From the NCBI RefSeq assembly GCF_006345805.1, contig NW_021832296.1, positions 1 to 31,387 on the forward strand: DNA of 31,387 nt, given 5' to 3'. The translations under genes and the position numbers were made by a program. Of the stretch, positions 17,252 through 30,056 are shown one piece after another. The notes below the pieces were generated by a model. That model was not told where the DNA came from. It saw only the letters and a list, made by a program, of their open reading frames with translations, and made no database searches. The DNA is from Octopus sinensis. Lineage: Eukaryota. Every line of letters begins with the position of its first letter. The first letter of the stretch is position 1.

Positions 17252-18166
17252 AATAATAATAATAATAATAACAATAATAATAATGATGATAATAATAATA
17301 ATATTAATAATAATAATAAAAATAATAATCAAATACTAATGATGCTGATGAGGATGATAATAATGGCAATAACAGCAATAACAATAATATTAATAATGTA
17401 ATAGTAATAATAACGTGATGATGATGATGATGATGATGATGATGGTTATGATGATGATGAAGGTGGTGGTGGTGATGATGGTGGTGGTGATGGTGATGAT
17501 GATGAGGATGTTGATGATGATGATGATGATGATGATGTTGATGATGGTCATCATGATGATTATGCTGCTGCTGCTGATGATGATGATGATGATAACAATA
17601 TGAATTGTTTAAAGGCGAGCAATACTAGCTTGAGAGCTTAGTCAACCACAGAGACCTCAGTATTTTACTGGTACCTTATTTCATCCACCGCAGCGGGATT
17701 CGAGTTCAGAACAAACACAAAGAGCCGGAAGAAATGCCACTGAGTGCGTTGTTCGACGCGCTAACAATTTTTGTCCGCTCGCTACATTAACAACAATAAC
17801 AACATCAGCAACAACAGCCAAAAACAATAACGACTATATAGGCGTAGGCGTGGGTGTGTGGTAAGTAGCTTGGTTACGAACCACATGATTCTGGGTTCAG
17901 TCCACTGCATGGCACCCTGGGCAAGTGTCTTCTACTATAACCTCGGTCCGACCAAAGCCTTGTGTGTAGATTTGGTTGACGGAAACTGAAAGAAGACCGA
18001 CGTATATATGTGTGTATATATATATATATATAATATATATACATATATTAACAATTAAGGAACGGCCATAATAGGCCATTCACCCTAGAAATAACAGCCA
18101 AAGCTTCTACCGCAAATAAAGATAATTCCGTAAACAGGAGAAAATAAAAAAAACATTTACCCTGTA

Positions 18167-18272
18167 ATTTCTTGTACGGTATACCGTTTTCACCGCTGTT
18201 TAATGGTAACTAACCTGATTAAATTAAATCAAGCCAATCCTCCATAAGCCCTCGGATTCTTCAGCAAGAAAT
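18167..18272 (-). ncRNA. Type I hammerhead ribozyme, family 1 inverted copy (slightly altered)
   Basis: Reverse complement of the family 1 HHR, but it reads CGGTGAAAAC instead of CGGATGAAAC at the stem II/GAAA junction. This is either a mutation or a sequencing error. Confidence 0.7.
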
Positions 18273-18625
18273 AGCTCAAGTCGGGACAGATATATACACG
18301 AGGCATACCCAATCTTGCCAAGTCAATATCTGACCTAAAATTTTCAAATTTTCAAATTGTTAATGTTGAACTTAAAAATGGTCTATGACTATTTAATTTT
18401 TTCCCACTGGGCCGCTGGTGGCAATAAAATTCTACAAAATTTTCCTTGCCACCCTATATTGATTAATTATGAATTTTTTGGTTAATTCCGTAATGGAATC
18501 GACGGCTGATATCTATTTGCTGCCGATAAATTTGGCGCGAGTGCGACGATTTGAAAATTTTAGGTCAGATATTGACTTGGCAAGATTGGGTATGCCTCGT
18601 GTATATATCTGTCCCGACTTGAGCT

Positions 18626-18732
18626 ATTTCTTGCTGAAGAATCCGAGGGCTTATGGAGGATTGGCTTGATTTAATTTAATCAGGTTAGTTTACCATTAAA
18701 CAGCGGATGAAACGGTATACCGTACAAGAAAT
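18626..18732 (+). ncRNA. Type I hammerhead ribozyme, family 1 copy 1
   Basis: Stem I ATTTCTTG(18626-33)/CAAGAAAT(18725-32); core CTGAAGA(18634-40); stem II ATCCG...CGGAT with a long internal hairpin (GGCTTGATT/AATCAGGTT, wobble-paired); GAAAC(18709-13); palindromic stem III ACGGTATACCGT; GTA triplet, predicted cleavage after 18724. Confidence 0.92.
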
Positions 18733-19118
18733 TACAGGGTAAATGTTTTTTTTTAATTTTCTCCTGTTTACGGAATTAATCTTTATTTGCGGTAGAAGCT
18801 TTGGCTGTTATTTCTAGTGGGTGAATGGCCTATTATGGCCGTTCCTTAATTGTTAATGTTGAACTTAAAAATGGTCTATGACTATTTAATTTTTTCCCAC
18901 TGGGCCGCTGGTGGCAATAAAATTCTACAAAATTTTCCTTGCCACCCTATATTGATTAATTATGAATTTTTTGGTTAATTCCGTAATGGAATCGACGGCT
19001 GATATCTATTTGCTGCCGATAAATTTGGCGCGAGTGCGACGATTTGAAAATTTTAGGTCAGATATTGACTTGGCAAGATTGGGTATGCCTCGTGTATATA
19101 TCTGTCCCGACTTGAGCT

Positions 19119-19226
19119 ATTTCTTGCTGAAGAATCCGAGGGCTTATGGAGGATTGGCTTGATTTAATTTAATCAGGTTAGTTTACCATTAAACAGCGGA
19201 TGAAACGGTATAACCGTACAAGAAAT
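19119..19226 (+). ncRNA. Type I hammerhead ribozyme, family 1 copy 2
   Basis: Same as copy 1 except one extra A in the stem III loop (GGTATAACC). Predicted cleavage after 19218. Confidence 0.88.
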
Positions 19227-19607
19227 TACAGGGTAAATGTTTTTTAATTTTCTCCTGTTTACGGAATTAATCTTTATTTGCGGTAGAAGCTTTGGCTGTT
19301 ATTTCTAGTGGTGAATGGCCTATTATGGCCGTTCCTTAATTGTTAATGTTGAACTTAAAAATGGTCTATGACTATTTAATTTTTTCCCACTGGGCCGCTG
19401 GTGGCAATAAAATTCTACAAATTTTCCTTGCCACCCTATATTGATTAATTATGAATTTTTTGGTTAATTCCGTAATGGAATCGACGGCTGATATCTATTT
19501 GCTGCCGATAAATTTGGCGCGAGTGCGACGATTTGAAAATTTTAGGTCAGATATTGACTTGGCAAGATTGGGTATGCCTCGTGTATATATCTGTCCCGAC
19601 TTGAGCT

Positions 19608-19714
19608 ATTTCTTGCTGAAGAATCCGAGGGCTTATGGAGGATTGGCTTGATTTAATTTAATCAGGTTAGTTTACCATTAAACAGCGGATGAAACGGTAT
19701 ACCGTACAAGAAAT
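19608..19714 (+). ncRNA. Type I hammerhead ribozyme, family 1 copy 3
   Basis: Same core and stems as copy 1. Predicted cleavage after 19706. Confidence 0.92.
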
Positions 19715-20299
19715 TACAGGGTAAATGTTTTTTTTTAATTTTCTCCTGTTTACGGAATTAATCTTTATTTGCGGTAGAAGCTTTGGCTGTTATTTCTAGT
19801 GGGTGAATGGCCTATTATGGCCGTTCCTTAATTGTTAATGTTGAACTTAAAAATGGTCTATGACTATTTAATTTTTTCCCACTGGGCCGCTGGTGGCAAT
19901 AAAATTCTACAAAATTTTCCTTGCCACCCTATATTGATTAATTATATATACATATATATATATATATGTATGTATGTATGTATGTTTTTGTCCTCCCAAC
20001 ATAACTTGACAACCGATGCTGGTGTGTTTACGTCCCCGTAACTTAGCGGTTCCCCAAGAGACCGATTGAATAAGTACTAGGCTTACAAAGAATAAATCCT
20101 GGATGTCGATTTGCTCGACTAAAGGCGGTGCTCCAGCATGGCCAGAGTCAAGTGACTGAAACAAGTAAAAGAGTCAAAGAGTATATGAATGTTTTCTTTA
20201 TTAGCCAGTAAATGGTTCGCAAAAATGTTGGAAACGGCACAGGACAATACAAAAAGCGTGTGAAGATGAACAAAGCAAAATAAATTCTAATAATGACTA

Positions 20300-20919: not shown

Positions 20920-21520
20920 GGCGGCGAGCTGGCAAAAATGCTTAGCACGCCGGGCGAAATGCTTAGCGGTATTTCGTCTGCGTTACGTTGTGAGTTCAAA
21001 TTCCGCCGAGGTCGACTTTGCCTTTCATCCTTTCGAGGTCGATAAATTAAGTACCAGTTACGCACTGGGGTCGATGTAATCGACTTAATACCTATGTCTG
21101 TCCTTGTTTGTCCGCTCTGTGTTTATCCCCTTGTGGGTAATAAAGAAATAGGTATTTCGTCTGCCGTTACGTTCTGAGTTCAAATTCCACCGAGGTTGAC
21201 TTTACGTTTCATCCTTTCAGGGTCGATTAAATAAGTACCAGTTACGCACTGGGGTCGATATAATCGACTTAATCCGTTTGTCTGTCCTTGTTCGTCCCTT
21301 CTGTGTTTAGCCCCTTGTGAGTAGTAAAGTAATAGGTATTTTGTCGAAATGCATAGCGGTATTTTGTCTATCTTTACGTTCTGAGTTCAAATTCCGCCGA
21401 GGTCGACTTTGCCTTTCATATTTTCGGGGTCGACGAATTAAGTACCAATTGCATATTGGGGTCGATCTAATCGACTGGCCCCCTCCCCCAAAATTTTGAA
21501 CATTGTGCCTAGAGAAGAAA
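20920..21520 (+). mobile_element. SINE family B with ~3 tandem bodies
   Basis: One head, with bodies restarting at about 20969, 21152 and 21336 (period ~183). Confidence 0.8.
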
Positions 21521-22313: not shown

Positions 22314-22386
<73 letters not shown>

Positions 22387-22641
22387 CAATAAAGATTCAA
22401 GTTAATTTAAATTAATTTACTTGAATATGGTACCTAACTTAGATGCACCAAAAAAAACTATACTGTTTTAACAATACAGTAATGTATGCTATTAGAACTT
22501 TTTTAAAATTCTGTGATAAGACTGTACATCATCTTTAAAGAACTTTAATGAACTTTGGAAATCTGTTTATGTTACTTAATTATCTACATTACTTCATGAG
22601 TATAGCCTCAACCACTAGGATGTCTAGAGAACTCACATGTA

Positions 22642-22732
22642 TTTTAGCTGATGAGTACGGGACACGTTTATATGCTGTAATTTTTACAACTTTTAATAAA
22701 GCCTGTCCTTGTATGAAACGATTGTACTAAAA
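22642..22732 (+). ncRNA. Type I hammerhead ribozyme, family 3 copy 1
   Basis: Stem I TTTTAG/CTAAAA; core CTGATGA(22648-54); stem II GTACGGGACA...TGTCCTTGTAT; GAAAC(22715-19); stem III ACGATTGT, self-complementary with G-U; GTA triplet, predicted cleavage after 22726. Confidence 0.85.
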
Positions 22733-22826
22733 ACCTATCCATTCTTGTTGCTTCTTTCTCGCGTATATATATATATATATATGTATATATATGTATGTAT
22801 ATATATATATGTATGTATATATATAT

Positions 22827-22862
<36 letters not shown>

Positions 22863-23116
22863 AAGCAATAAAGATTCAAGTTAATTTAAATTAATTTACT
22901 TGAATATGGTACTAACTTAGATGCACAAAAAAAACTATACTGTTAACAATACAGTAATGTATGCTATTAGAACTTTTTTAAAATTCTGTGATAAGACTGT
23001 ACATCATCTTTAAAGAACTTTAATGAACTTTGGAAATCTGTTTATGTTACTTAATTATCTACATTACTTCATGAGTATAGCCTCAACCACTAGGATGTCT
23101 AGAGAACTCACATGTA

Positions 23117-23207
23117 TTTTAGCTGATGAGTACGGGACACGTTTATATGCTGTAATTTTTACAACTTTTAATAAAGCCTGTCCTTGTATGAAACGATTGT
23201 ACTAAAA
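23117..23207 (+). ncRNA. Type I hammerhead ribozyme, family 3 copy 2
   Basis: Identical motif 475 bp downstream. Predicted cleavage after 23201. Confidence 0.85.
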
Positions 23208-23476
23208 ACCTATCCATTCTTGTTGCTTCTTTCTCGCGTAATATATATATATATATTATATATAATATATATATACTGTTGTGACCCCCATCGGTCATGA
23301 ATGACCATGTGTTTGCACCTAGAAAATTACCCTCCGAGGAACAAGTCTGTACAAGGTTATTTATGGAAGACCAGCAGTCGCCCATGCATACCAGCCTCCC
23401 ATCTCCATGCCACCGATGTTATCCAAGGGAAAAGCAAAGAGGCCGATACAGCTTGGCACCAGTGACGTCGCAGCTC

Positions 23477-29457: not shown

Positions 29458-30056
29458 GGCGGCGAGCTGGCAGAAACGTTAGCACGCCAGGCGAAATGCT
29501 TAGCAGTATTTCGTCTGTCGCTATGTTCTGAGTTCAAGTTCCGCCGAGGTCGACTTTGTCTTTCATCCTTTCGAGGTCGATTAAATAAGTACCAGTTACT
29601 CACTGGGGTCGATATAATCGACTTAATCCGTTTGTCTGTCCTTGTTTGTCCCTTCTGTGTTTAGCCCCTTGTGTGTAGTAAAGAAATAGGTATTTCATCT
29701 GCCGCTACGTTCTGAGTTAATTTCTGCCGAGGTCGACTTTGCCTTTCATCCTTTCGGGGTCGATTAAATAAGTACCAGTTAGTCACTGGGGTCGATATAA
29801 TCGACTTAATCCGTTTGTCTGTCCTTGTTTGTCCCTTCTGTGTTTAACCCCTTGTGTGTAGTAAAGAAATAGGTATTTCGGCTGCCGCTACGTTCTGAGT
29901 TAATTTCTGCCGAGGTCGACTTTGCCTTTCATCCTTTCGGGGTCGATTAAATAAGTACCAGTTACGCACTGGGGTCGATATAATCGACTTAATCCGTTTG
30001 TCTGTCCTTGTTTGTCCTCTTTGTATTTAGCCCCTCGTGGGTATTAAAGAAATAGG
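29458..30056 (+). mobile_element. SINE family B with 3 tandem bodies
   Basis: One head, with bodies restarting at about 29506, 29690 and 29873. Confidence 0.85.

Follow-up and report, generated by a model that had tools for sequence, protein, structure and literature searches.

The window analysed here, a stretch of 31,387 nucleotides from Octopus sinensis (contig NW_021832296.1), contains two oppositely oriented arms of a repeat with a unit of about 491 nt, set between microsatellites. We propose that this locus is probably one insertion of a non-autonomous, non-coding retroelement, a metazoan non-LTR (long terminal repeat) retrozyme with a type I hammerhead ribozyme (HHR), which would have been placed by the reverse transcriptase and GIY-YIG endonuclease of a Penelope-like element (PLE). 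We assign it to the metazoan non-LTR retrozymes because the 491-nt unit carries a type I hammerhead. An earlier note on this stretch had read its tandem repeats as a cephalopod retrozyme family. The host is in line with that reading, as are the type I HHR in each tandem unit, the non-coding, self-paired and dispersed character of the family and the presence of PLEs in the genome.

The larger arm lies on the plus strand (18355-19945) and comprises 3.24 head-to-tail units of about 491 nt each, with a start-to-start spacing of 489-493 nt and 96-100% identity in a direct-repeat search. When one unit is used as a blastn query, the arm resolves into a partial unit (unit positions 124-494, at 18355-18724), a full unit of 494 nt (18725-19218), a full unit of 488 nt (19219-19706) and a partial unit (positions 1-239, at 19707-19945). 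The lengths of the two full units match the 494-nt and 488-nt cut-to-cut lengths given in the earlier note. Its description of head-to-tail, non-coding units of ~490 bp also holds, since the repeat search, the blastn map and the longest open reading frame (ORF) per unit, of 66 aa, agree. An exact-protein look-up of this ORF in public assemblies gave no match. With its maximum period set to 500, Tandem Repeats Finder gave no entry for the 491-nt array of the window. The repeat search found no terminal direct repeats beyond the units themselves, and there is no LTR, primer-binding site (PBS) or polypurine tract (PPT). The unit has a GC content of 36.9%, and its predicted circular minimum free energy (MFE) is -145.7 kcal/mol (z = -5.9).

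This array is one arm of a two-armed insertion. Inverted repeats, the blastn map and the end sequence together identify a 5'-truncated arm on the minus strand (18047-18349), made of unit positions 318-494 followed by 1-133 and 96-97% identical to the unit. The tandem part of the array that the earlier note had placed at 18355-19944 is thus retained, but not its description as a simple head-to-tail array: the note had missed the inverted arm, a fourth hammerhead and the outer (TA)n tracts. The two arms meet at a 5-nt filler, TTTCA (18350-18354), which with its neighbours forms a short duplication of TTTCAAAT. At the other side, the minus arm terminates in ...CCTTAATTGTTAAT and is directly followed by ATATGTATATATAT..., the beginning of the left flank. 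This flank (17996-18046) is a (TA)n-rich microsatellite and the presumed target tract; it continues a SINE-like (short interspersed nuclear element) sequence at about 17860-17995. The right flank (19946-19990) is a (TA)n / (TATG)n microsatellite, and (TA)n therefore stands against both outer ends. These ends differ. The outer (3') end of the minus arm is at a position that we call site A, and that of the plus arm is at site B. Between site A (...CUUAAUUGUUAAU) and site B (...CUAUAUUGAUUAAUUAU), the alternative 3' termini, lie 106 nt, which form a tail (19840-19945, plus strand) that is terminal on the main arm only.

The SINE-like sequence of the window (17860-18046; ...GGTTCAGTCCACTGCATGGCACCCTGGGCAAGTGTCTTC...GACGGAAACTGAAAGAAGACCGACG) runs into the (TA)n tract holding the insertion, and a second locus (L042) has a sequence of this kind that likewise runs out in (TA)n. 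Many of the target tracts may come from such tails.

We searched the O. sinensis assembly (2,719,151,902 bases in 13,516 sequences) for other copies. The unit matches at least 265 places on many chromosomes, with 96-100% identity. A 36-nt pattern covering the 3' half of the HHR and the unit junction, allowing at most 3 mismatches, gave 695 matches, and its reversed control gave none. The genome-wide copy count proposed in the earlier note thus describes a dispersed family, of about 700 units. The first 100 pattern places fell into 33 loci, which by extrapolation to the 695 matches makes roughly 230 loci. We read the loci as 3.5-kb pieces and short end pieces. Arrays range from 1 to 11 or more units, and the family is young, with units about 98-99% alike.

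The insertions have a recurrent architecture. In 16 of the first 33 loci of the pattern search, a minus arm precedes a plus arm, so that both 3' ends face outward; the opposite order was never found. All 45 examined arm ends are at one of two sites, directly against (TA)n: site A, at consensus position 131 (...CCUUAAUUGUUAAU), or site B, at about position 234-241, around 237 (...CUAUAUUGAUUAAU(UAU)). In addition, every pair with both ends readable (23/23) has one A end and one B end, which has a probability of about 1e-7 if the ends are independent, and the 106-nt A-to-B tail is present on exactly one arm in each of the 23. A stable hairpin of 8 bp precedes each of sites A and B by 13-14 nt, and 11 bases are common to the two 14-mers. 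Truncation of the inner (5') ends occurs at many unit positions, and the joins between arms hold 0-20 nt of filler or overlap by 1-2 nt. The distribution of these ends has one marked excess: the 28 nt on the 3' side of the predicted ribozyme cut contain 13 of the 47 inner ends, against an expected 2.7 (P = 1.5e-6), and the first 9 nt contain 8. An RNA end at the ribozyme cut would stop reverse transcription there and would explain this accumulation near position 1.

Four of 15 inner junctions join arms that stop near the same unit position (355|356, 470|470, 187|178 and 223|202), resulting in near-perfect palindromes. These are at L101 (G000:C2:16871473-16871775), L108 (G000:C2:159804678-159804749), L094 and L098, and may result from cDNA ends pairing at short self-complementary stretches. 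A snap-back (hairpin) origin of the arms was rejected, because most inner ends are not symmetric.

These features can be compared with what is known of PLEs. Their insertions are partial tandems, often with an inverted 5'-truncated copy at the 5' side; a tail of 30-40 bp is found at one end, and insertion is biased towards microsatellites such as (TA)n (Craig et al., PMC8557442). A purified PLE protein was shown to cleave AT-rich DNA sites and to extend both strands there; its reverse transcription starts at two internal RNA sites, the tail being the sequence between them (Frangieh et al., PMC11167929). The octopus family resembles the insertions of Neptune, Penelope/Poseidon and Naiad elements (PMC8557442, PMC11167929) in having an inverted 5'-truncated copy beside tandems and a tail at one end. 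It also resembles PLE insertions in its two apparent internal start sites for reverse transcription, in the apparent use of both target strands, in its presumed AT-rich or (TA)n target and in the presence of an HHR in the repeated part. It differs from them in having no ORF, a tail of 106 nt instead of 30-40 nt and arms of up to 11 or more whole units instead of a partial tandem. The link to PLEs, which the earlier note had taken from the literature, thus receives direct support from the insertion architecture, and autonomous PLEs occur in the same genome. One might argue that the (TA)n is merely a 3' tail made by the enzyme and not the target. This view is weakened by two observations: PLE copies carry (TA)n at their 5' ends too, and the left tract of the window continues a SINE tail.

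Inverted structures have another precedent. In the twin priming that Ostertag and Kazazian are said to have described for human L1 in 2001, both 3' ends of a staggered break reportedly prime reverse transcription, and the resulting inverted structure, in which the 5' part of a single copy is inverted, is joined by microhomology. The octopus insertions differ from this account in that both arms carry the 3' end of the element outward and each arm is multimeric.

We can now describe the motif that identifies the family as a retrozyme. The unit junction reads AUUUCUUG-CUGAAGA-AUCCG...CGGAU-GAAA-CGGUAUACCG-UA|CAAGAAAU. Helix I has 8 bp (AUUUCUUG/CAAGAAAU) and is open-ended, which is the type I topology; the core is CUGAAGA and the cut triplet GUA. 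Helix II is a 68-nt imperfect hairpin overall, with a 5-bp base (AUCCG/CGGAU) and an extension that is 63% paired. Helix III has 4 bp (A-U plus CGG/CCG, including 15.1-16.1) and a UAUA loop. The conserved core (C3 U4 G5 A6 N7 G8 A9, G12 A13 A14, A15.1-U16.1 and H17) is present in all three plus-strand copies. In a constrained fold the HHR reaches -39.8 kcal/mol, against -41.8 kcal/mol for the MFE structure, and helices II and III are already present in the unconstrained MFE. The ACGGUA/UACCGU of helix III is a 12-nt palindrome, such that two motifs could pair as a double hammerhead. Newt satellite 2 and the salamander HHR repeats are likewise tandems with a type I HHR, whose helix III is short and capped by a palindromic loop, so that two motifs can act as a dimer. 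The octopus family differs from these repeats, which reportedly reach 10^5 units, in the 4 pairs of its helix III (including 15.1-16.1), its very long helix II and its number of units, about 700.

We scanned the window with a strict HHR descriptor, which demanded 6 bp or more in helix I, CUGANGA, 4 bp or more in helix II, GAAA, a closed helix III, and UH. The descriptor matched exactly three times, with cuts after 18724, 19218 and 19706, and gave no match in 200 dinucleotide-shuffled windows. These are the three cuts predicted in the earlier note, whose account of a complete type I hammerhead per full unit (8-bp stem I, CUGAAGA, 5-bp stem II base, GAAAC and GUA) is confirmed by the sequence and the descriptor. 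The first hammerhead (18626-18732, plus strand) equals the family consensus, with helix I formed by 18626-18633 and 18725-18732 and the core at 18634-18640. The second (19119-19226, plus strand) has an extra A in the loop of helix III (GGUAUAACC), and the third (19608-19714, plus strand) again equals the consensus. The inverted arm holds a fourth hammerhead with a damaged core (18167-18272, minus strand), where CGGUGAAAAC stands in place of CGGAUGAAAC. It is missed by the descriptor and is predicted to be inactive because A11.2 is lost and the GAAA has an extra A.

Among 74 genomic unit junctions, 64 (86%) have an identical HHR 3' half and all core bases. In a diverged lineage, 5 of 117 compared HHR positions differ, all pairs and core bases are kept and the only core change is at the variable N7 (to U). 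That pairs and core are kept in this lineage is no more than suggestive. On these grounds the unit motif is a type I hammerhead, although an atypical one, given its long helix II and its score below the Rfam cut-off, and its self-cleavage is predicted.

Some units carry a 3-nt duplication, CGGAUGAUGAAAC replacing CGGAUGAAAC, between helix II and the GAAA core. Three arrays show it in single units, two such units being in the C1 array (unit junctions G000:C1:147339617, C1:147342556, C12:74272830 and C5:125766441), and it is probably a recurrent duplication by slippage.

Taken together, the insertions would arise as follows. The arrays would be transcribed, and the ribozyme would cut after GUA to release 491-nt monomers, the palindrome of helix III letting two copies act as a double hammerhead. 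A host ligase, or just helices I and III, would then close the monomer into a circle. The junction of such a circle would have the same sequence as a unit-unit junction in an array transcript, so that the back-spliced reads proposed as a check in the earlier note would not distinguish the two. A PLE ribonucleoprotein would cut both strands of a (TA)n tract, and reverse transcription would be primed on each strand from one of two internal modules, each consisting of the hairpin and CUWWAUUG(A)UUAAU. Several rounds on the same template would produce multi-unit arms, and end joining would finally unite the two cDNAs in the middle.

A number of results weigh against this interpretation. Nothing in the window reaches the gathering score of Rfam (34 bits for Hammerhead_1). 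In the Infernal/Rfam check suggested by the earlier note, by E-value, copies 1 and 3 match Hammerhead_1 (RF00163) end to end with 21.4 bits (E 0.017-0.057, in small searches) and no other ribozyme family is matched, but copy 2 is not reported at E <= 10. The alignment attributes the score shortfall to about 57 inserted bases in helix II. The base of this helix is A10.1-U11.1 and not the usual G-C. Furthermore, a 68-nt helix II and a perfect 8-bp helix I make the canonical contact between loop 1 and loop 2 unlikely. We observed no sign of covariation: among 28 distinct, near-identical HHR sequences no pair changed on both sides (0 double changes), 6 one-sided changes preserved the pairing and 21 of the 36 pairs did not vary, which equals the shuffles. 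This test is uninformative because the copies are 96-100% alike and the family is too young. Per-site diversity is the same in the HHR and in the rest of the unit (1.0% and 1.0%), as expected if copies decay neutrally after insertion. Stalling of the reverse transcriptase, at helix I or where a U-run occupies positions 21-28, could instead explain the accumulation of inner ends near the predicted cut. Finally, the unit has no significant blastn similarity to 16 PLE or HHR loci, which include both untranslated regions (UTRs) of one intact PLE family, described below.

Some of these points would also fit a PLE-dependent retroelement in which the hammerhead is a passenger or relic, a reading that we regard as unlikely. 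Templates would then be multimeric or read-through transcripts, and the tandems would come from the habit of the PLE enzyme, with neither monomer nor circle. It is known that PLEs form partial tandems and that some of their clades (Naiads) lack canonical HHRs (PMC8557442). HHR mutants of the anole PLE left insertion in vitro unchanged, and no reads ended at the cut site (PMC11167929), which also counts against a role of the ribozyme in the octopus insertions. The HHR of the octopus copies being no better conserved than the rest of the unit points the same way. However, the core is intact in 86% of the junctions and in the diverged lineage, and inner ends cluster just 3' of the predicted cut. 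The variants that distinguish loci also argue against multimeric templates, as they are fixed throughout a locus, in every unit of either arm. For example, 6 sites are variant in 11-12 of 12 units on C12, and 3 sites in 4/4 units on C3. Across 14 loci and 2,587 overlapping inner-unit columns, 71 differences from the consensus are common to both arms and 30 are private to one. Such uniform daughter arrays fit the repeated copying of one monomer, whereas a multimeric transcript would bring along the unit-to-unit differences of its source. The seamlessness of 64 of 74 unit-unit junctions is part of the same picture. Apparent scars at the junctions, where some units aligned only to position 488, were dismissed as blastn end effects of single substitutions.

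We tentatively suggest, as a possibility that we hold to be rather less than even, a more specific form of the retrozyme reading. Each insertion would derive from one circular or helix-closed 491-nt ribozyme RNA, and a pair of PLE enzymes would obligatorily use two different start modules, one per DNA strand, both rounding the same circle. If this is true, the rule of one A and one B end, the shared variants, the seamless junctions and the pile-up of stops would be the first genomic footprint of retrozyme circles as integration templates, and PLE integration would be an intrinsically two-site, two-strand reaction.

The two remaining explanations are both very improbable. Ordinary satellite DNA, spread at the DNA level by unequal crossing-over, segmental duplication and palindrome formation and resembling an HHR by chance, could be invoked since the Rfam gathering threshold is unmet and since DNA-level duplication with gain or loss of units does occur in the C27 arrays described below; this is opposed by the lack of descriptor matches in shuffled windows and by the same two precise outer ends recurring against (TA)n on many chromosomes, one of each in every readable pair, with different inner junctions, because DNA duplication would copy junctions and not regenerate fixed ends. 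A DNA transposon with long inverted tandem-repeat arms (foldback-like), or a rolling-circle element of Helitron type inserting at AT, would account for inverted arms of tandem subrepeats and for A/T flanks, but arm lengths and inner junctions vary by locus, so that the palindrome does not move as one block, the two ends differ from each other (site A vs site B) and finish in ...TTAAT, where Helitrons have CTRR with a 3' hairpin, and no transposase or Rep/helicase ORF is associated with a unit whose longest ORF has 66 aa.

The C27 arrays are two copies of one two-armed insertion, 42 kb apart (G000:C27:12862023-12866008 and 12903756-12907741; L002-L005 and L012). They have an identical inner junction, the only one common to two loci, but one of the arms holds two full units in one copy and three in the other. 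Segmental duplication and a later gain or loss of a unit are indicated, or else an assembly collapse.

A retrozyme would need a PLE partner, and the genome offers candidates. There are many GIY-YIG matches in O. sinensis, and PLE ORFs with RVT_1 and GIY-YIG domains, many of them intact; in O. vulgaris, whose lineage separated about 2.5 My ago, around 30 PLE families are reported (PMC13282606). The candidate partner is a family with intact 781-aa frames in the same genome. Three of its four copies end in ...UUUUUUACAAAU, or a near variant, directly against (TA)n, and the tract is ~35 nt further on in the fourth (L043). Two further intact copies start at (TA)n with their 5' ends. This is the intact family whose UTRs lack similarity to the unit. 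Its 3' UTR contains a hammerhead-like motif (L046, ~2370-2405), UUGAUAA-GGUUC(10 nt)GAACC-GAAA-CAUG-UA|AAAUU, ~70 nt before the 3' end of the element. In this motif U3 and A8 replace C3 and G8, two positions that are mutually paired in the active fold.

The genome also contains at least seven canonical short type I HHRs above the Rfam cut-off (L031-L037; e.g. G000:C13:29988995-29989039). Their form, GUAC-CUGAAGA-GACCCAGAAUGGGUC-GAAA-CAUGUGUC-GUAC, is the minimal kind reported in PLEs. They come from the scoring of 74 of 265,664 first-look candidates, and the true number in the genome is much larger than seven. The 491-nt unit has no similarity to these loci, nor to the second hammerhead family described below. 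A pair of canonical HHRs on C16, spaced by 431 nt, resembled another retrozyme and was found to be a local duplication that includes microsatellites.

We then compared the octopus family with known retrozymes. Metazoan non-LTR retrozymes were defined in coral, mussel and axolotl, and PLEs were named as their likely mobilisers because the two have ribozymes and tandem structure in common and occur together (Cervera and de la Pena 2020, NAR, PMC7229834). The octopus family has in common with them head-to-tail non-coding repeats, one type I HHR per unit, the lack of LTR, PBS and PPT, a self-paired predicted RNA and dispersed arrays coexisting with PLEs. Its GC content (37%) can be set beside their below 45-50%. 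Its unit, at 491 nt, is longer than their RNAs of 170-400 nt and repeats of 150-450 bp, and its HHR differs in its 68-nt helix II with A10.1-U11.1 and its score below the Rfam threshold. The text of PMC7229834 has 0 occurrences of 'inverted', 'microsatellite' and 'target site', and leaves twin arms, fixed 3' termini and (TA)n flanks unmentioned. More recently, vertebrate retrozymes were described as non-autonomous PLE derivatives originating from PLE pseudo-LTRs (pLTRs), with consensus lengths of 51-972 bp, a range that includes 491 (Li, Clavereau and Pollet 2026, bioRxiv 10.64898/2026.07.22.740005). The argument of Li et al. is based on cross-species co-occurrence and on pLTR similarity in Xenopus, and covers no molluscs; ours is based on insertion architecture, and pLTR similarity was not found. 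We found no description of a cephalopod retrozyme in the literature searched, and no ribozyme is named in an annotation of O. vulgaris repeats from 2026.

The window contains two other kinds of repeats. A second, unrelated hammerhead-like repeat is present in two plus-strand copies (22384-22764 and 22863-23239), each flanked by (TA)n, with predicted cuts after 22726 and 23201. Its motif is UUUUAG-CUGAUGA-GUACGGGACA...(43 nt)...UGUCCUUGUAU-GAAA-CGAUUG-UA|CUAAAA. This motif is found by a relaxed descriptor alone, which gave 2 matches in 200 shuffled windows, and is not reported by Rfam at E <= 10. It resembles the HHR of the 491-nt family in its long helix II, the U at 11.1 and GUA|C. Positions 103-381 of the repeat recur with 100% identity at dozens of loci in the genome (1,716 first-look candidates), and the full element, of ~650 nt, ends 38 nt past the predicted cut, against (TA)n. 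The other repeats are tandems of 183-184 nt (20968-21345 and 29506-30056; 2.1 and 3.0 copies with 88-94% matches) that include a tRNA-like stretch, GAGTTCAAATTCC. ARAGORN detected no tRNA in the window.

These results support the view that the family is a new cephalopod example of an already known class, whose spread by PLEs is backed by the architecture of its insertions. In the papers compared here, the link between retrozymes and PLEs is made of co-occurrence, shared ribozymes and pseudo-LTR similarity in frogs; the octopus insertions carry the full PLE signature, and their sites are directly readable because the family is young. The strict pairing of an A end with a B end goes unmentioned in the PLE papers that we compared (PMC8557442, PMC11167929). 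Since hammerheads with a long helix II escape the Rfam threshold, censuses of retrozymes made with that model probably undercount them. The octopus family offers a clean natural system for two-strand priming by PLEs, for the origin of the tail and for the putative use of a ribozyme-made circle as a template.

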